Below are positions 9,657-21,206 of a stretch of DNA of 64,000 bases, piece by piece. The stretch is from Epithemia pelagica. Its lineage: Eukaryota; Protista; Bacillariophyta. Each line of letters opens with the position of its first letter. Position 1 is the first letter of the stretch. A program made the translations under genes and the position numbers. The stretch covers positions 3,224,001-3,288,000 of the forward strand of contig OX337236.1 of assembly GCA_946965045.2 (NCBI GenBank), written 5' to 3'. The notes below the pieces were generated by a model. It was not told where the DNA came from and did no database searches. It saw only the letters and a program-made list of their open reading frames with translations.

Positions 9657-10856
9657 TCATTTATTGGTCCTTGCTTGTTTACGATTGAAAGTCGAGGAAG
9701 TGCAGGATGTTGCACTCACATGTCGGATATCCATTCCTTTCCGAAACTGATACCATCCGTCGTTGGGCAGCTGCTCACAGAGTCGACAAAAACACCATGA
9801 ATGCTTGCCCATTAGTGGCATTGTCGCACAGGCAGGATTGTAACGTCCAGCAATCAAGGCAATTTGATTGGCAACAGTCACCATATTGCAGCCTTCAACG
9901 TTAGTTTCGATGGATGGGAGATTCCACCTGTGGTTGCTGTGTGTATCCAAGACTTCCACGGTTCGACTGCCTCCTCCCGCCACCACCAGACAAGATCCCA
10001 CGGCAACTGCTGCACAAGAATATCGTAGGTGGGAAAGTACCAAATCAGAATGAGTGATCCAACTGGATGAGAAGGACATGATGATTGTAGAAGCAGTCTC
10101 CTTCTTTGTCTCATCCTTGGCACAAGGCTTTGCAACGTCCAAATACTCCACCGATTCAAGAAACGGATAGTCATTATTGTTATGACCTCCGACGACAAAG
10201 ATGCGGTGACCAACGACCAAACTGGTACACCCAAATCGTGGAACGTTGAGGCATGATCCCGCAGTGACACTGTGGTTGCTGGTATCAATAATATCCACCG
10301 AAGAAAAGCTTTGCCCTCGATCCCTTCCCCCCACTACGACAAGGTATCTATTGTTCACCGCAACAGCACCACATCCATATCGTCCCGTCGATAACCGACA
10401 GTTCAATGTCTTCCAATGGATCTCGTGTGTGATGCTTGATGTCGAGGACGATCGCAGCAAATCATTGGCATCAATTTGTTTGATACAATCCAAAGTTGAA
10501 CCATGACTGTACCCTCCCATAACGTAGACGCTGCCATTGCACACAACAGCGGCATGTTCACGACGGCTCTTGTTCATGGGTGGCCCTTCTCGCCACTGCC
10601 TATTGGACTCTGATAAATTCAATACAAGAACGGACTTGGTGTTACCCTGGTCTTGTTGAAATCCGCCCATCACCACGACTGTTTGTCCGTTGTTGTTGTT
10701 ATTGTCGTCTTCATCGGGGTGATCAAGTACGACCGTAGCATGTTGTTCACGCCATCCACCCTCAAGAGGAGGCCAATCGTTGTCATTCCATTCTTCTCTC
10801 TCGTCCAAAAGGACAAGGCCCGACTGCCCTGCTTGTTCTTGCAGTGTCATGCTCAT
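9657..10856 (-). CDS. Stand-alone kelch-repeat protein, paralog 3, 399 aa
   Basis: Collinear with paralog 1 over its full length; six GG-type repeats; intact ORF. Confidence 0.9.
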   Translation of the reverse strand: MSMTLQEQAGQSGLVLLDEREEWNDNDWPPLEGGWREQHATVVLDHPDEDDNNNNNGQTVVVMGGFQQDQGNTKSVLVLNLSESNRQWREGPPMNKSRREHAAVVCNGSVYVMGGYSHGSTLDCIKQIDANDLLRSSSTSSITHEIHWKTLNCRLSTGRYGCGAVAVNNRYLVVVGGRDRGQSFSSVDIIDTSNHSVTAGSCLNVPRFGCTSLVVGHRIFVVGGHNNNDYPFLESVEYLDVAKPCAKDETKKETASTIIMSFSSSWITHSDLVLSHLRYSCAAVAVGSCLVVAGGGSRTVEVLDTHSNHRWNLPSIETNVEGCNMVTVANQIALIAGRYNPACATMPLMGKHSWCFCRLCEQLPNDGWYQFRKGMDIRHVSATSCTSSTFNRKQARTNK

Positions 10857-10920
10857 GACCCCAAACGTTGACTGCGGAATTTATGAGTCTCGCGAGATCG
10901 AGAGGGCGTTTTTGCGGCTG

Positions 10921-11493
10921 ATGGGTAATGCCCACTTGTTGGGCAATAATCACCTTGATGAGGGGCGCCGAGAACGTGTATTCAATCCAACGAAAGGGAT
11001 TTTGATGACGTTCAATGTAGTACATGTAGGTGTCACGAAAGGCAATACACGACAAATGCTCCAAGCCCGACAAGAGAGCGACCAAGGGGATCAACCACAA
11101 GATGGAAAAGTCCGACACTTGTTTGGCTTCAGGAATCCGGTCGGCATTCTCATCTCCCAAGGAAGGATTGGGGTAATGGACATACCAATACCAGGTGGTC
11201 GAATCGTCTTCTCGCATAGCAATAAAAAAGAGAATGAGGGCTTGCGTAATTTGGAAAAAGGCCGCTGCTCCACTCCAATTGGACAAGTCCTCGGGAACCG
11301 TATTGAGATTGAAAATCTCCGTGGCAATTTGCCGTTCGGCTTCTCGTAGTTTCTCTTCGGTAGTCTTGATGACGACAATGTTTTCGTCCTGGTAATCATC
11401 TTGGGGGTCGTTCGCTTGCTGTTGTTCTGCCGCCGACTGGGCCCACTTGGATTTGGGAGGATTTCGCGGTATGGCTTGTTCTTGGGACATCAT
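10921..11493 (-). pseudogene. Truncated heliorhodopsin paralog (N-terminal extension plus TM1-TM3 only)
   Basis: Homologous to 12617-13609 up to QVGIT, then runs into the kelch-3 upstream region (ORF stops at 10783); lacks TM4-TM7 and the retinal-binding Lys. Confidence 0.85.
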
Positions 11494-12616: not shown

Positions 12617-13609
12617 TCAAATGGCATTGACCACGGTCAGCCAGGTCAAGATTGTCTTGGCGGTAAAACTCAAAGCGATAAAGGCCTTTTCCCCATTCAC
12701 ATAGTCTTCAAAGATGCCAATCTTGCTCCACTGCAAATAAAATGTAATGGCAAACGACGTGTCCATCAAGAACTGCAAAATGACCAAGGCCCAGACGGAG
12801 GAACCCTCTCCGCCACGACTGTTGTAGACGGCAAAGTAGTTGAAAATCAGGGCCCAATTCGTCAAATGGCCAATCCAGCCCGTGAAGAAGGGCCTCCAAT
12901 TCTGGGCACGATTCTCCGATCGTGCCTTGGCATTGCAAGCCTCATGAGTCGCGGCGCATTGAATGGAAATGGCCATGATGACAAACATGGCAATCAACAA
13001 ATGAACGTCGGTAATGCCCACTTGTTGGGCAATAATCACCTTGATGAGGGGCGCCGAGAACGTGTATTCAATCCAACGAAAGGGATTTTGATGACGTTCA
13101 ATGTAGTACATGTAGGTGTCACGAAAGGCAATACACGACAAATGCTCCAAGCCCGACAAGAGAGCGACCAAGGGGATCAACCACAAGATGGAAAAGTCCG
13201 ACACTTGTTTGGCTTCAGGAATCCGGTCGGCATTCTCCTCTCCCAACGACGGATTGGGATAATTGACAAACCAGAACCATTCATTCGTGTCGTCCCGTGT
13301 GGCAATAAAGAACAAAACGAGGGCTTGCGTGATTTGAAAAAAGGACGCGGCTCCACTCCAGGTGGACAAATCTTCGGGGACCGTATTGAGATTAAAGACT
13401 TCAGTCGCAATCATGCGTTCGGCTTCGCGCAACTTTTCTTGCGTCGTCTTGATGACCACCACATTGCGATTGTTGGCGTCGCGTTCAAAGGTTCCACCCG
13501 TTGCCATGGCCGAGGTCGACGGTGCGGCTCCGCCACGCGAGGTGGACCATTTGGACTTGGGGGGCGATCGGGGCATGGCTTGTTCTTCCATGATGGCTTG
13601 TGAGTCCAT
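12617..13609 (-). CDS. Heliorhodopsin (7TM retinal protein) with ~80-aa N-terminal extension, 330 aa
   Basis: Heliorhodopsin signatures QNPFRWIEYTFS (TM3), IAQQVGITD, GEKAFIALSFTAKT (TM7 SxxxK; S314, K318), LSGLEH (TM2 His); seven hydrophobic segments; intronless. Confidence 0.92.
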   Translation of the reverse strand: MDSQAIMEEQAMPRSPPKSKWSTSRGGAAPSTSAMATGGTFERDANNRNVVVIKTTQEKLREAERMIATEVFNLNTVPEDLSTWSGAASFFQITQALVLFFIATRDDTNEWFWFVNYPNPSLGEENADRIPEAKQVSDFSILWLIPLVALLSGLEHLSCIAFRDTYMYYIERHQNPFRWIEYTFSAPLIKVIIAQQVGITDVHLLIAMFVIMAISIQCAATHEACNAKARSENRAQNWRPFFTGWIGHLTNWALIFNYFAVYNSRGGEGSSVWALVILQFLMDTSFAITFYLQWSKIGIFEDYVNGEKAFIALSFTAKTILTWLTVVNAI

Positions 13610-15188
13610 CTTGTGTTGGTTTCGTTCTGACTATCTCTTGTTTGGCTTTGTGGTGGCGTGCGTGTGGTGGCTTGTCGACCAGGTTGTTTGGTTCTCCCAG
13701 CCCTTGTCGAAAAAGTGACCTGGCGTGAGAAAGAGGACAAACTTCGTCCTACCAATTCCATGTTGGGCGTGTTTGACACAACATTTTTTCGGAATCTGGT
13801 AAGGAACACTGACTGTACATTTACTCAAAATTGGCATACCCTCCGACTAGATGTCCGCTTCTTAGCTCGTCTGTTCGGGCAAGACAAACCCAATCTCACA
13901 GACAAAAAATGAATGGAAATTTCACATCCATCGGTGGAAAGGCTGGCGTGATGTGACAGCTGGAAGATGGCAGGCGTTCTGCTCAACAAGACTCAAAATA
14001 ATGTTCTCAGTGAGATCACGGGTCACAAAATCGATGCAGGCAACAAAACGAGGCAATGACCAAACCAACATCAAAAACGGCATGCTTCGTCCCTGGCCAT
14101 CTCATCTCATCTTTGTCACTGCACATCCATCATGGTAAGTTCTGGAATGGCTAATAATTGCATTGGAATGGACAATGTTTAGTTGTAGGCTCTCACTACG
14201 TTGCCAGTTGCCATAGTGTGTCATTTGTTTGTGCCATGTAACATCCATTTTGGTCGATGCCATGTGGGGCTGCTGGCATCATTTGTAGGATTCTTATAGG
14301 ACAAAATAGAGCTATAGACCTCAATTAGGAGTAGGTAGGATAAGTGGAGGAAGCCATCCATTTTTCCTCTGCTGTCGCTCAGTTTGGGTCTTTAGTGGAT
14401 TGTGATGTCGACCTGCTCCTGTTGTTCTTTTTTTGTTACCATGAGCATGACTTGTCTTTCCCAGCAGTGCAGGGGACTCTACACTCTATATGCTCCATAA
14501 CGCAACTAGAAAGAGACGTATTCTAAAATAGGACTGTATGTGGTTGCAAAGAGACAAGCCTACGGCAACGGCACGGTGTTGTGGAGGAGGGTCCACTTTT
14601 AAACGGACACAAACACTAGAAACAACCACACTTCTCCTAGAAAAAACAAAGAAAGGATGGGGTAGAGCAAAACACTATCTATGGTCTATATGTCAAATGT
14701 CCATGGTGTGCAGATGATAGAGAATGCATTGTGATGGTGCATGTCCATTATCCATGTCAAAAGGTGCGTAGTGAAAATAATGTGGGTCGCAACTTGGGAC
14801 GACAATCAAGAATGGGGAAGACCAACGGTCAAAGTGCGCACGCCTGCTCACAAAATTTCAAAACGGTGATCCAGAAGGCCGGCGTGATCATTTTCATTTT
14901 GACCCGAAATTTTCTTCAAAAACGCAAAAAAACCAAAATTAAAATTGTTGGTCGCGGAGAGCGGCTGGGGGGCTAAGAAGCGGACACCTAGTCGGATTCT
15001 CCAAAATTTCCGAGGAATTTCCTCCTTTCAGTCTAGTATGGAAAGTACAAATGATAGTTTGGACGGTTCTGTGAGGTAAAAAGGCAAAAGGCTCATGACT
15101 CATGACTCGCAATGACATCATCCCCCGAAATGGTTTATAGAACTTGTACAATTCCCCATATCCCCCAAACTTTCTTGATTATGACTCC

Positions 15189-17271: not shown

Positions 17272-20094
17272 TTACTGACATGTATCGTTCGAAGAGGGTG
17301 CATTCTCCAGCCGAGGTGATGTTACTATTCTTGAGCACCCCTCCTCTTTGGTCGTTTCTTCGTGAGACGTGTCGGTCTGAGAAGATTCGTTTGTCACGGT
17401 TGTGATTGTGGTATCTTGCAGAATCCTACCTGCCTCTGACTCAGCGCCAAAGGGACCTTGCGGTTCTTCTTCTGGCCCTCCTTGCTCCTCTTCCTTGTGG
17501 TATTCCGAGTCGGCTGAAAACACAATTTCGGCCGAACCCATCGAGCAGTGGTAATTGGCATTTTCGTCTTCTTCTTCAATGGTTGATGTGGTGGATGGCA
17601 CCACATCATGTTGTAAATCTTGACAGCTCACAACCATGTCGGATGGATCCACCGTGCTGACACTGGATGGATGAGGCGATTGTGTTTCTTCTTGAGTCGA
17701 GGAATTCCATTCTTTCGTGGAAGTTGTCGTAGTGTCCATTCCTATATTGTCAGTGATGGTGGTCGTTTGGGAAACATCCCGGACCGAGGAGGAGATCCGA
17801 GACGATTCTTTAATGGGCAAGAGCTCTGCGGATGCTCCCGCCGAGGCAACCGCGGCACCACTGGCAATCAATGCCTCATTGCCCGTCAGGGTGTTGTTGC
17901 TGTTGGACGGCGTTGGCGATAGGGTACTACTGCCACCACCATGTTTCAATCTTCGAAATTCCATCGAGGTTGATCCCGAGTCATAGGTTTCTACGGTGGT
18001 GGCCACATGCGAACTTGCTTCGCTACTGTTGTTCATTCGGACATTGTCCGACGAAACGGGGTCAGAGGAAGGAGCATTGCGGACTCGCGCTTGGAAATCT
18101 CGTACCGATTCGGAAATTTCTCGAATGCGGCTTTCAAACAAGCGCTTTTGTTGCTCCCGACTGAGACCGGCATAGTCGCGTTGCAACCAAATCTTGGGGA
18201 CAAAAATGAGAATGAGCAACCCTTCGCACACGAGGAAAATGACCATGGTCAAAATCAAGTAATAGGCTGAGGGTTGTCCCTTGGCCACCACCACCACGGG
18301 GATACCGGTCAAAAAGGCTTGAAACAGTCCACCCACGGCCAGTCCGACATATTTGGCTTCGGAAAACTCGGATTTGAGATTGCGAGCCTTGATGGCTTGC
18401 CATGAGGCGATGACGAGGACAAAAAAGTTGATGAGGGCCAATGGAACGAGGTAGGCCAAGACATTTTCGGATCGACAGGACCCGTAGGTGGAAATGACGC
18501 GATTCCAATAATCGGTTCCTTCGTGTTCTTCTCGTTGATACTTGAGTGGATCAATAATGGTCCAACAAATCAAGACTGCAAAGTTGCAGGAGAGCAAGAC
18601 CAAAAAGGGGGGCAAGACATCGTATTCGCTGACTCGAATCCGAGTCATTTGATTTTGCAAATGAAACAATTTGTTGACTCTCCACAATTTGCTAAAGAGC
18701 GCCGAAAAGGTAATGGTAAAGCCGGTAAAGGCAAACCAGGGCACACTCATGCAAATCACCACGCTCTTGGCATGGCTCATATCTTCACTGCCACCTCCAT
18801 CGTCAAAGGTAAGAGGAATCAAACTCCCACTCATAATCAAGACACCAATCGCCACCATGACCAAAAAGAAGGGTTGCGCCGCCGATACAACAATGGAGGT
18901 TCGATTGCGATAGGTCCAAAACAGACATCCTGCAATCGAAAGAAGGACGATACCGAAACAAACATAACCGACCCATTCCAAAGAGCCAATCAAATTTTCA
19001 TCAACTTCCAATTCCGGCAATTCCAACGGAATGAGGTTGTAGGCCACAATATTGGTGGCAATGTATTCTTCCGCCACACTGGAAACGTCTCCTCCGGCTT
19101 GTGCCGTGGTGACCAAATCGTACAAGACGTGCGCCGATCGGAGACCCATTTCGTAGGGCATTTGACCGACCAAACCATCGACATAGCGACTATTGAGATA
19201 GGCCAATTGAAAATCGGCTCCATCCGTTCCAATATAAATAATGCCCTTGTGTCTATTTCGATCGACAAAATTGGTACAATTCTCGTGTCGCATGGGCGTT
19301 TGTTTCATAAAAATCATGGCCGTGGGATTGAGTGCAGCGGCCCGTTCCATGACGGGCATGTAATTGTGACCGGGTGGATTTTTGAAGGGATGCGAATCGG
19401 TTTCATTGTTAACTCGATAATAGGCCCATAAATGATCGTGCGTCGGACCTTCCATTTCGTACCAATGCGCGCGATCGTCGCGGTGATTGTACCGGGTAAT
19501 TTCTTCGACAAAGCCTCGATTGCGAGGATCCTTAAAGCCCACAAAGGTATAATTGCCTCCCTCTGGTCGCAATTGGCGCAACAATTTGGCCATGGTCCGG
19601 CCCATAAAGGCGTTGTCCGTTCCGACATAGGACATGCGACTCGAATTGGCCACATCTCCGTCCAGTAAGGTGATAAAGACCCCTCGTTGTTTGGCTTCAT
19701 CAAACAATTTGCGCATTTCGTCGTGTTCGGAGCACGGTTTCAACGCAATTCCGGAAACGCCCATATCCATCCATTTCTCGACTTGTTCACGACGATATTC
19801 GAAACATTTTCTCGGTGGTCCATCGTCACCGTCCGGTTGTTGCGATGCATAACAGGTAATGCCCAGAAGTTTGCATTGATGAAACCAGCCCTCATAAACG
19901 GGTTCGAAAAAGAGAGACCCTCCATTGTACAAGGCCAACGAAAAGGCTTGCGTCGTGTGCCGGCTGGTTTGCCATGCCAGTAACAGACTGATGATCCACA
20001 TCATCCGACAAAGACTACCAATGGTGCTTGAAGAGCAAGCAGTCGTCCTTGTCATGGGAGACCGGTGTCGTCGTCGAAACAAGTGGGTCGCCAT
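17272..20094 (-). CDS. Class C (GABA-B-like, 7tm_3) GPCR with a type I periplasmic sugar-binding-protein-like ectodomain
   Basis: Signal peptide (MMWIISLLLAW); RbsB-like motifs GVSGIALKP, ITLLDGD, YVGTDNAFMGRTMAKLL, YVDGLVGQMPYEMG; 7TM motifs AAQPFFL, FSALFSKLWRV, SEFSEAKY, LIFVPKI; Ser/Thr-rich tail. Start placed at ATG 20094; the ORF is open from TTG 20157. Confidence 0.9.
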   Translation of the reverse strand: MATHLFRRRHRSPMTRTTACSSSTIGSLCRMMWIISLLLAWQTSRHTTQAFSLALYNGGSLFFEPVYEGWFHQCKLLGITCYASQQPDGDDGPPRKCFEYRREQVEKWMDMGVSGIALKPCSEHDEMRKLFDEAKQRGVFITLLDGDVANSSRMSYVGTDNAFMGRTMAKLLRQLRPEGGNYTFVGFKDPRNRGFVEEITRYNHRDDRAHWYEMEGPTHDHLWAYYRVNNETDSHPFKNPPGHNYMPVMERAAALNPTAMIFMKQTPMRHENCTNFVDRNRHKGIIYIGTDGADFQLAYLNSRYVDGLVGQMPYEMGLRSAHVLYDLVTTAQAGGDVSSVAEEYIATNIVAYNLIPLELPELEVDENLIGSLEWVGYVCFGIVLLSIAGCLFWTYRNRTSIVVSAAQPFFLVMVAIGVLIMSGSLIPLTFDDGGGSEDMSHAKSVVICMSVPWFAFTGFTITFSALFSKLWRVNKLFHLQNQMTRIRVSEYDVLPPFLVLLSCNFAVLICWTIIDPLKYQREEHEGTDYWNRVISTYGSCRSENVLAYLVPLALINFFVLVIASWQAIKARNLKSEFSEAKYVGLAVGGLFQAFLTGIPVVVVAKGQPSAYYLILTMVIFLVCEGLLILIFVPKIWLQRDYAGLSREQQKRLFESRIREISESVRDFQARVRNAPSSDPVSSDNVRMNNSSEASSHVATTVETYDSGSTSMEFRRLKHGGGSSTLSPTPSNSNNTLTGNEALIASGAAVASAGASAELLPIKESSRISSSVRDVSQTTTITDNIGMDTTTTSTKEWNSSTQEETQSPHPSSVSTVDPSDMVVSCQDLQHDVVPSTTSTIEEEDENANYHCSMGSAEIVFSADSEYHKEEEQGGPEEEPQGPFGAESEAGRILQDTTITTVTNESSQTDTSHEETTKEEGCSRIVTSPRLENAPSSNDTCQ

Positions 20095-21206
20095 GTTGTT
20101 CGTTTGGTGATGTTGTTTGGTTGTTTGTTGGGAAGGAAGAGATGCTAGCCCTAACACGAACCCAAGTTCTACAGGTGGGGTTCATTTCAAGACTGGCCAA
20201 AACAATCTGAGGGCAAACATTTCCTGATCACCCCGCAAGGAACTTCGAGAACTTCGCCGATGATGGGGCAGTCCTCTGAAACGAATTGGTGGTCATAATA
20301 CACTTCCTTTATACTCATTTGTTTCCAGTACCAGACGCTGGAAAGTGGTAATGGAATGTCTCCTTCATGTCCGATGGCAGAGGTTCTGATTGGGGACCGG
20401 ATCGCATCGGACATTATGGATAAAATGAAGACGACTCCACTTTCTGTTTTGCTGCTGACTGCTGACTGGTGAAAAGAACCATTACAGATTACAGCCCGAC
20501 GCAATGGGCTGTAGTGATTGAGTTTGCGTATTCGATTGATAGTCCGAGTTCCGAGTTCCCATTATGATTCGATATTCGATCCTTCATACAGCAACTTGTA
20601 TATTGACGGATTGACTGGAACTGGTCATGTCGAATCTATCGAGAGCTGATCGAGAGCTGATCGAGAGCTATCGAGAGCTACCTCTATGGATACAGAAGAC
20701 TCATTCTGTGGATAGCGCAAAAATCTACAGCTAGACTACCTAGGAAGTTAGGTAGGGACGTAGGTCTTCTATGCAAGATCTATTGAAAACCTCACACCCA
20801 GACTGAAACTACTGGAAATGAACAGGTAGGTAGGAGAAGTAGAGATCGAGAAGACTGATCAAAATCAAAGAATATGTGTGGGTCCTACGAATTTTGGTCA
20901 ATCACCCTCCTGACTTATTTTCGTCACTGACGGTTTCGCGTCGTCGAGGATGACGTCACATCCTTGGATCTGGCCCTACAGGCTGACTGGTCAAACGAAC
21001 CCTATTCTATATTCTACTATTAATAGCTATCTTTTTGCTTTTTTGGAAATGAGGTAGGATGGTAGTAATGTAGGACGGACTCTACACGGTCCGCCTGCGA
21101 GTCGGTCGTGGTTCGTGGTGCACATAGCGAAGCGACTCCCTAGCTATCTATGGATATATGGTGGGCTACCCATATTGCTGTCACTCATGATAAATGACTA
21201 CTCCTA

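Follow-up and report, generated by a model that had tools for sequence, protein, structure and literature searches.

The window, the whole stretch of 64,000 nucleotides from Epithemia pelagica that was analyzed, contains an intact, intron-free heliorhodopsin (HeR) gene of 330 codons plus stop and a truncated tandem copy, both on the minus strand. The features to which the text refers are the following:

10924-11484, minus strand: truncated tandem copy 2, TM1-3 only (equivalent to residues 8-200), from tblastn, blastn and a four-way alignment.
12617-13609, minus strand: HeR gene (copy 1), from the ORF, Pfam, PDB profile matches, AF2 model and Foldseek.
12656-12658, minus strand: codon of K318, the Schiff-base lysine (= K241 of 48C12), from the ungapped TM6-TM7 HMMER alignment; invariant in full-length homologues.
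12761-12775, minus strand: TM6 segment from Q279 to D283, from the alignment and published equivalences.
12857-12877, minus strand: TM5 segment W245-H248-N251, from the ungapped alignment anchored on P240, F241, G244 and W252.
13040-13042, minus strand: codon of K190 (= I116, extracellular half of TM3), from the alignment and residue census.
13067-13069, minus strand: codon of E181, the single counterion (= E107), from the alignment and census.
13145-13150, minus strand: codons of E155 and H156, from the alignment.
13334-13336, minus strand: codon of Q92 (= H23, TM1), from the alignment and census.

Comparison with Pfam revealed that the protein passes the threshold of the heliorhodopsin family (PF18761, type-3 microbial rhodopsin), with an E value of 3.3e-49 and a score of 167.8 bits (cutoff 26.7), over positions 1-240 of the 242-position profile; all solved HeRs in the PDB were also matched by profile (2e-42 to 6e-38). 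The AF2 model has the seven-TM rhodopsin fold, with pLDDT above 90 in the TM core and a long AB β-hairpin between TM1 and TM2 (strands 112-118 and 131-138), and its ten best Foldseek matches were HeR structures only, with TMt 0.91 to 7u55 and a range of 0.82-0.91 for TaHeR and 48C12. The Pfam match, the predicted fold and the profile alignment thus bear out the assignment to the heliorhodopsins made in the first-pass annotation. The same fold (TMt 0.82-0.91) is found in the characterized non-transporters 48C12 (bacterial), TaHeR (archaeal) and Cv06 (Chromera velia, PDB 9VFC), which also have in common with this protein the AB β-hairpin and the dimer contacts (D127 and Y179 of 48C12 are matched by D201 and Y258), but identity to them is only 25-27%. 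No introns are needed in the reading of the gene, since the ORF can be aligned over its whole length with the solved HeRs, whereas many homologues seem to have an intron before TM7. Many homologous proteins diverge past ‘...KIPPFDG’ or ‘...KIGPFQG’, which looks like gene-caller read-through of that intron.

The 7TM core occupies residues ~80-329 and follows a cytoplasmic N-terminal extension (residues 1-79), for which M1, M7, M12 or M35 are candidate start codons and which, examined by eye, is hydrophilic and without a signal-peptide-like segment. The predicted extracellular loops contain 3 K/R versus 10 D/E, and R163, R172, R178, K228, R230, R234, R239, K296 and K308 lie at the cytoplasmic ends of the helices. 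This pattern, which is a charge count only, fits the inverted topology of HeRs, with the N-terminus cytoplasmic, positive charges inside and negative charges outside.

The residue equivalences were taken from an HMMER profile alignment against 48C12 (6su3, native numbering) and TaHeR (6is6), which is ungapped through TM5, TM6 and TM7. The lysine of TM7, the single Glu counterion of TM3 and the TM7 serine are all present: K318, E181 (= E107) and S314 (= S237), the last one turn ahead of K318; all three are invariant in full-length homologues. R178 (= R104) is positioned 3 residues before E181, and this Arg and Glu are invariant in all 70 proteins compared. Together with H156 (= H80), E223 (= E149), Q293, E307, Y303, N175 and Y166, these residues align with the conserved HeR network (PMC7049168); the Lys, Glu counterion, Ser, Arg, H80, E149 region, Q216, E230, Y92, N101 and Y108 are shared with 48C12, TaHeR and Cv06. 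Y182 (= Y108), W252 (= W173), F286 (= F209) and A287 are kept throughout the diatom clade.

Against this conserved background, the protein differs from the three characterized HeRs at N16 (S85, 7 residues before Q92), H23 (Q92), F79 of 48C12 or A81 of TaHeR (E155; A125 in Cv06), I116 (K190), C166 (W245), G169 (H248), P172 (N251), L202 (Q279) and F206 (D283). The network is accordingly not of the canonical 48C12 type (Kovalev subfamily-1-like), with Q92, S85, H156 and an added E155 in place of the His23/His80 pair and Asn16. The residue identities listed in the first-pass annotation, together with all of its 48C12 equivalences, were upheld by the profile alignment, and the extra polar residues that it had placed within helices are all inside helices of the AF2 model. 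None of the substitutions is found in 48C12, TaHeR or Cv06, so that the annotation's own objection, that such residues might be common in characterized non-transporting HeRs, did not hold for these three.

Heliorhodopsins in diatom genomes have been known since the family's description. A residue census of 70 homologues and an ML tree including 26 diatom-type rows placed the protein in a diatom-type clade (support 99/90) as sister to Epithemia clementina, of which two hypothetical proteins, ACA910_002515 and ACA910_010253, have 71% and 53% identity to it; PtHeR of Phaeodactylum tricornutum and MPSEU_000617600 of Mayamaea pseudoterrestris belong to the same clade. Alignment had been suggested as a check on whether Q92, K190 and D283 define a clade, and it revealed that the substitutions are consensus residues of diatom HeRs as a group rather than a peculiarity of this gene, although identity among the members is only 40-70%. 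Asp or Glu is found at position 283 in 26 of 26 diatom-type rows, while the other 33 rows have Phe except for one fragment (P0068, Arg); Lys or Arg is found at position 190 in 25 of 26, the residue being hydrophobic in every other sampled HeR group. Gln at position 92 (21 of 26 rows) and, in most sequences, Glu or Asp at position 155 and His or Gln at position 248 are likewise shared, as is a conserved N-terminal cytoplasmic helix motif. By contrast, the only full-length sequences with Gln279 are this protein and the two of E. clementina; the fragments P0010 and P0024 have it as well. Elsewhere in the clade the residue is Met, Leu, Ile or Phe. Taken on its own, the gene is an ordinary orthologue inside the diatom HeR clade. 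A literature search found no diatom or stramenopile HeR characterized by spectroscopy, electrophysiology or structure; Cv06, which does not transport and has a photocycle like that of 48C12, is the sole eukaryotic HeR with a solved structure.

Copy 2 lies inside an ORF (10783-11493), stops at residue 200 and lacks TM4-7 as well as the Schiff-base lysine; a tblastn search (E ≤ 10) for its TM4-7 detected nothing across the whole window. Its 3' 228 bp (10924-11151) are 100% identical to 13010-13237 of copy 1, a stretch that, judging from the sequences, is a gene-conversion tract. Directly after it, the four-way alignment and the comparison of the window with the other haplotype (L001) revealed a 663-bp deletion, and in that other haplotype copy 2 is frameshifted. 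A break of the Logan contig at 10924 and a collapsed 228-nt contig agree with this structure. The reading of the locus as two paralogs was rejected, copy 2 being a pseudogene that has decayed in two different ways; the statement that Ser and Gln occupy the N16 and H23 positions in both copies is correct for the residues, but the second copy is truncated and dead. Between the haplotypes of copy 1, 7 of 993 nucleotides differ, none of them non-synonymous in the 7TM core, and divergence is 0.7% in the HeR CDS versus about 3.4% over the aligned locus, which speaks for selection on the gene. Transcription of copy 1 is suggested by a 981-nt contig in run X4 (recorded neither as RNA nor as DNA), which covers 12663-13617 only and leaves the unique flanks without coverage, and by a 177-nt piece with 98% identity in a marine metatranscriptome. 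In diatoms, HeR transcripts are responsive to blue light (PMC7670200; 10.64898/2026.07.27.741118).

The substitutions fall into three modules at named positions, and the alignment places them at sites that have a bearing on function: Q92, S85 and E155 in the Schiff-base cavity; W245, H248, N251 and D283 in the retinal pocket and fenestration; and K190 in the extracellular half of TM3. In the cavity, His23 and Asn16 are replaced by Gln92 and Ser85, and Glu155 is added as an extra carboxylate beside the kept His156. As position 79 is counted among the cavity-forming residues (10.1101/2025.11.27.691015), E155 is, on the alignment, a residue lining the cavity and a likely explicit proton acceptor. 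The TM3 module consists of the conserved basic residue Lys190.

In the pocket module, Phe206, Gly169, Cys166 and Pro172 are exchanged for Asp283, His248, Trp245 and Asn251. D283 aligns with F206 of 48C12, F203 of TaHeR, W195 of V2HeR3 and W182 of bacteriorhodopsin (BR; alignment; PMC9448325, PMC6951262), and F206/BR W182 is the conserved aromatic residue flanking retinal (PMC6951262). W245 and H248 (= G171 of TaHeR, MO position 5.54) occupy the two fenestration positions, whose roles have been described (PMC13739731; 10.1101/2025.11.27.691015), and N251 that of the π-bulge proline of 48C12. Kornilov et al. (2025 preprint, 10.1101/2025.11.27.691015) define the fenestration and carotenoid site by an aromatic pair at 162/206, small residues at 166/210 and Gly at 169; here F241 is present, but D283 is found at 206, and W245 and H248 replace the small residue and the glycine, so that only A287 (210) fits. 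With these four substitutions the TM5-TM6 fenestration, which serves retinal uptake and proposed carotenoid binding, is probably closed and polar. Going by what has been published on the homologous positions, Asp283 probably carries a proton or pairs with His248, and it should tune colour or kinetics.

We consider the gene, which is nuclear, intron-free and of the diatom type, to be the functional HeR copy, whose product would be a retinal-binding, slow-cycling, non-transporting photosensor, and give this reading as a whole, sensory function included, a probability of roughly 0.65. By homology, all-trans retinal would bind K318, with E181 as the single counterion and S314 at its TM7 position. 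Illumination would start a slow HeR-type photocycle, with the proton of the Schiff base passing into the cytoplasmic cavity and later coming back, and the protein would signal to a cytoplasmic partner rather than transport ions. An altered colour or altered photocycle kinetics are plausible from the sequence. This function is extrapolated from relatives of ~25% identity in which precisely these substitutions are missing, and an Asp in place of an aromatic residue critical for stabilizing the polyene (PMC6951262) could shift chromophore binding or photochemistry beyond what is assumed here.

One alternative to a distinct role of the substitutions is that they are neutral, lipid-facing or structural, and that colour, photocycle and retinal handling are those of 48C12 and Cv06. 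The fully kept core network is compatible with this, as is the position of K190 ~1.7 turns from the end of TM3 in the AF2 model, from which it could snorkel to the surface. The description of the H23/H80 pair in the first-pass annotation as the proton-accepting group of 48C12 is partly outdated, H23 and H80 not being essential proton acceptors, and H23A, H23S and H80A leave the absorption maximum of 48C12 unchanged (PMC6951262). However, D/E283, K/R190 and E/D155 are near-invariant in a clade of 40-70% identity, which argues for selection on them, and positions 206, 169, 166 and 79 are documented in the retinal pocket, fenestration and cavity rather than facing lipid; we regard purely canonical function as unlikely. 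At the other extreme, loss of F206 and closure of the uptake fenestration might prevent stable retinal binding, leaving an apoprotein or non-photoactive derivative with a light-independent membrane role. F206 and Y108 are described as critical for polyene stabilization (PMC6951262), and TaHeR G171W inhibits retinal uptake (PMC13739731), His being found at that position here and Trp one turn earlier. This very improbable reading would hardly explain why the lysine, the counterion, S314, Y182, W252, F286 and A287 are kept throughout the clade, and the dead copy 2 exemplifies the effects of relaxed selection at the same locus.

Proton transport, light-driven or light-gated, was also considered. 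Extracellular to retinal, the part of an internal proton donor or acceptor comparable to BR D96 would be played by Asp283, Gln279 lying behind it and Lys190 close by; Glu155, His156 and Glu307 would be the cytoplasmic accepting group that completes the pathway across the membrane. A fully hydrophobic extracellular half has been used to explain the lack of transport by 48C12, TaHeR and Cv06, and K190, Q279 and D283, in or near that half, break this rule. V2HeR3 and related proton-transporting viral HeRs (Kovalev subfamily 2) likewise have polar residues there, and, like the diatom clade, they lack P172 and the fenestration motif (10.1101/2025.11.27.691015, PMC7049168). The proton-accepting E205 (Q/E) and E215 of V2HeR3 have equivalents in Q293 (= Q216) and E307 (= E230), residues that do not discriminate, as non-transporters have them too. 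The comparison in the first-pass annotation of D283 with the TM6 carboxylate of V2HeR3 turned out to be one helical turn off: the published equivalences of TaHeR I199 and F203 rule it out, and the hallmark E191 aligns with Q279 (= L202 of 48C12, I199 of TaHeR; PMC9448325). Gln at this position, occupied by Met, Leu or Ile in most of the clade, corresponds to E191Q, which abolishes the V2HeR3 photocurrent (PMC9448325), and the required co-gate W195 is missing, D283 being in its place. His at 162 or 166, part of the viral signature, is absent, with F241 and W245 instead; a metagenomic P0032-like group fits that signature far better (Glu202, His162, Phe206). Even E191 is no guarantee, since EhHeR and McHeR carry it and do not transport (PMC9448325), nor does Cv06 transport. 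In addition, V148, I145 and I141 of the TM1-2-3-7 tunnel and I192 at the BR-D96 position stay hydrophobic (alignment read against PMC6951262). Because Gln replaces E191, W195 is lost and the tunnel is hydrophobic, the ion-conducting function that had been proposed is not favoured; V2HeR3-like transport is unlikely, and so is proton transport through Asp283.

With the non-transporting photosensor retained as the preferred reading, a further, tentative one is that diatom-type HeRs form a functionally distinct class, having Asp283 at a near-universally aromatic retinal-flanking site, a fenestration plugged by His and Trp and an extra cavity Glu, and with Asp283 as an internal proton donor/acceptor or a strong spectral tuner; we hold this to be possible, at well under even odds. 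If true, colour, photocycle or (inward) proton transfer would be unlike those of both the 48C12 and V2HeR3 types, and this in diatoms, a main group of ocean primary producers. The diatom HeR clade itself was known; what is gained is the set of clade-wide modules and the corrected counterpart, Q279, of the viral transport carboxylate. We regard the diatom clade as worth expressing. Should Asp at the W182/F206 position alter colour or the way in which protons are handled, it would mark out a new subtype of HeR by function, and rhodopsin engineering would gain a new tuning position; should it alter nothing, the aromatic residue there would be dispensable in HeRs.

The 330-residue ORF at 12617-13609 (minus strand) encodes a heliorhodopsin (HeR), as the first-pass annotation had held: its product matched Pfam Heliorhodopsin (PF18761) across essentially the full model (E 3.3e-49), its sequence matches among solved structures were heliorhodopsins only, and a 13-sequence profile scored E 2e-42 to 6e-38 against the solved HeRs. 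An AlphaFold2 model built from this profile alignment contained seven helices and the TM1-TM2 beta-hairpin typical of HeRs (mean pLDDT 80, most of the TM core >90), with residues 1-52 disordered. All solved HeRs ranked first in a Foldseek search with the model (archaeal TaHeR, 7u55: TM-score 0.91 by target, rmsd 1.7 A), and type-1 rhodopsins ranked far below. The gene, which requires no intron, belongs to the already known diatom HeRs; its nearest named relatives were two hypothetical proteins of Epithemia clementina, 71% and 53% identical to it, followed by matches from Mayamaea and Grammatophora, all diatoms.

Other features around the gene, in window coordinates
10400-10907: repetitive DNA directly downstream of the shortened copy 2
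10924-11484, minus strand: copy 2, a partial tandem HeR copy
13842-14996: 1155-bp element with 25-nt terminal inverted repeats, 96% complementary
17272-20157, minus strand: 961-aa ORF, ~3.7 kb upstream on the HeR strand

The same locus was present in ENA contig ERZ21939226 ctg1252l (L001) at ~96.6% nucleotide identity with many indels; this contig comes either from a second haplotype or from a strain very close to this one. Its HeR CDS differed at 7 of 993 bases. Both amino-acid changes (G26D and Q57A) lay in the N-terminal tail, and the 7TM core carried three synonymous changes and zero replacements, a pattern that, small as the numbers are, fits purifying selection. Logan contigs from four runs of one organism contained the locus. 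Transcription is suggested by a 981-nt contig from sequencing run X4, which spans only 12663-13617 with the unique flanks absent and looks like a transcript, together with a 177-nt piece at 98% identity in a marine metatranscriptome. L001 lacks the 1155-bp element, which in the window lies 233 bp upstream of the HeR start codon; the contig depth at its ends (10^4 to 10^5) identifies it as a high-copy non-autonomous DNA transposon, which could influence the promoter of this allele. The 961-aa ORF combines a periplasmic-binding-protein domain (PF13407) with a following class-C GPCR 7TM domain (PF00003), and no evidence of a functional link to the HeR was found.

Copy 2 comprises only residues 8-200, and tblastn found its TM4-7 nowhere in the window. 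Over its last 228 bp (10924-11151) it has 100% identity to copy 1 (13010-13237), and the rest matches copy 2 of the other haplotype, which differs from copy 1 by ~17% in this tract; the tract is a gene conversion from copy 1 into copy 2. It ends exactly at the junction, with 3-bp microhomology (ACC), of a 663-bp deletion, which took out TM4-7 together with the 3' flank. Copy 2 of the other haplotype (L001:11996-12951) is full length, with a 1-bp deletion at ~codon 153 and Gly for the conserved Glu at the 48C12 E230 position; in the public gene calls it appears as two proteins of 143 and 188 aa, the longer being homologue P0006. If the 1-bp deletion is not an assembly error, these two independent lesions in two haplotypes indicate that copy 2 is a pseudogene. 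The repetitive stretch at the 3' side of the shortened copy had, in three runs, Logan contigs of very high depth that joined in many alternative ways.

HMMER profile alignment to bacterial 48C12 (6su3, native numbering) and TaHeR (6is6, index = native + 6, verified on K238, E150 and Y164) ran without gaps through TM5, TM6 and TM7, and the 48C12 equivalences originally drawn by hand were correct. Every extra polar residue lay within a predicted helix of the AlphaFold2 model.

Residue equivalences (window protein = 48C12)
S85 = N16
Q92 = H23
Q95 = Q26
E155 = F79
H156 = H80
Y166 = Y92
N175 = N101
R178 = R104
E181 = E107, counterion
K190 = I116
H222 = Q148
E223 = E149
F241 = F162
W245 = C166
H248 = G169 = TaHeR G171
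N251 = P172
W252 = W173
Q279 = L202 = TaHeR I199
D283 = F206 = TaHeR F203
T284 = N207
F290 = Q213
Q293 = Q216
E307 = E230
S314 = S237
K318 = K241, Schiff-base lysine

Column-by-column census of 70 homologues and a maximum-likelihood tree of 59 cores revealed a diatom-type clade (26 rows, support 99/90), a small 48C12-like group and a large metagenomic P0032-like group. Within the diatom-type clade, position 283 was Asp/Glu in 26/26 rows, 190 Lys/Arg in 25, 92 Gln in 21, 155 Glu/Asp in nearly all, and 248 His/Gln in all except one; position 251 was variable, with Pro in a single row. Only Gln279 was confined to the window protein and the Epithemia proteins sister to it; Q92, K190 and D283 thus define the clade, a point that the first-pass annotation had singled out for checking. 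Judged from these sequences, the polar pattern is a property of the clade, not of this gene. It corresponds to the diatom HeRs already known from PMC7670200, which names PtHeR, from a mention in PMC8413402 and from their detection in ocean metatranscriptomes (PMC8017926).

An N-terminal cytoplasmic motif, VVIKTT.EKL.EAER (residues 51-69; 13402-13459, minus strand), is kept across the clade and lacking in prokaryotic HeRs; it is predicted helical at 57-69 (pLDDT ~66-75) and could be a partner-binding element. In P0012-P0014, P0016, P0019, P0021, P0025 and P0026, similarity ends after KIPPFDG or KIGPFQG, without TM7 and its lysine, which looks like a conserved pre-TM7 intron, absent from the window gene, read through by prokaryote-style gene callers. 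P0028, a 198-aa diatom-type fragment, has Glu at 279 (E191 equivalent), Glu at 283 (F206 equivalent) and Phe at 248; in this natural variant the viral hallmark and the carboxylate of the diatom clade occur together. The P0032-like group has Glu 202, His 162, Tyr 166, Gln 169 and Phe 206, a signature given by Kovalev et al. for viral subfamily 2 and the eukaryotic U8 group (PMC7049168). Its metagenomic members P0032, P0034-P0054 and P0057-P0063 (~25-30% identical) carry Trp at 207 and Glu at the V2HeR3 E191 position; by this signature, that of the subfamily with proton transporters, they are stronger candidates for transport than the window protein.

D283 had been likened to the essential TM6 carboxylate of the viral proton transporter V2HeR3. 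That residue, E191, equals TaHeR I199 (PMC9448325), therefore 48C12 L202 and therefore Q279, and D283 sits one turn deeper, at TaHeR F203, 48C12 F206, V2HeR3 W195 and BR W182; the analogy was therefore misplaced. E191Q abolished the V2HeR3 photocurrent, and E191 is "essential but not sufficient", since EhHeR and McHeR carry it and do not transport (PMC9448325). At position 206 HeRs have a "highly conserved phenylalanine", which flanks the retinal polyene together with Y108 (PMC9448325; PMC6951262). An acid at this retinal-flanking aromatic position arguably makes D283 more unusual than had been supposed. By analogy with the buried carboxylates of BR, Asp283 would most likely be protonated or paired with His248.

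H248 takes the place of TaHeR G171 (MO position 5.54), a glycine that belongs to the lateral opening and whose mutation G171W inhibits uptake of retinal (PMC13739731). The fenestration/carotenoid-site motif of Kornilov et al. (an aromatic residue at both 162 and 206, nothing bulky at 166 or 210, Gly at 169), found in 91% of HeRs and absent from the transporting viral subfamily (10.1101/2025.11.27.691015), is lacking in the window protein, whose residues at 162/206/166/210/169 are F, D, W, A and H. Because these five positions line one opening in solved structures, we infer that W245, H248 and D283 close the fenestration and make it polar, with H248 a likely partner of D283. Position 79 is counted among the residues of the hydrophilic cavity beside the Schiff base (10.1101/2025.11.27.691015), so E155 adds a carboxylate to the cavity of a protein that has lost H23. 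The 48C12 mutants H23A, H23S and H80A had unchanged absorption maxima and the histidines were called not essential (PMC6951262); thus Q92 alone is unlikely to matter much, and E155 is the more interesting change. K190, six residues before the TM3 end in the model, may just snorkel; its counterpart I116 lies in the extracellular, usually hydrophobic half, and is charged in other subfamilies (Kovalev et al., PMC7049168). The residues filling the 48C12 TM1-2-3-7 tunnel, F72, V69, V65 and L118 (PMC6951262), correspond to V148, I145, I141 and I192, all hydrophobic, with I192 at the BR D96 position in the alignment read against PMC6951262.

All characterised HeRs outside the viral transporting group, eukaryotic Cv06 from Chromera velia included, show no transport and a seconds-long photocycle (PMC9448325 and the Cv06 study). 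Because the window protein also keeps the full core network and has a "null" residue, Q279, at the hallmark E191 position, it is probably, by analogy, a retinal-binding, slow-cycling, non-transporting photosensor (probability roughly 0.65). Proton transport via D283 is unlikely with Gln in place of E191; the residue observation behind the earlier interpretation stands, and the interpretation itself holds in part, without its V2HeR3 analogy. It is also doubtful that the clade residues lack any functional consequence: a snorkelling K190 and a weak Q92 would agree with this, set against an acid at 283 in every diatom-type row. Loss of chromophore binding is improbable; a closed fenestration might hinder retinal uptake, and the Schiff-base lysine and counterion are in place.

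If the protein is such a photosensor, E155 would most plausibly alter proton acceptance in the Schiff-base cavity, and D283, H248 and W245 colour, kinetics, and retinal or carotenoid access. Open-access papers and bioRxiv yielded neither a characterised diatom HeR nor a discussion of the clade signature. It is this clade-level signature, above all Asp at W182/F206 with His at the fenestration glycine, that is the part worth pursuing.
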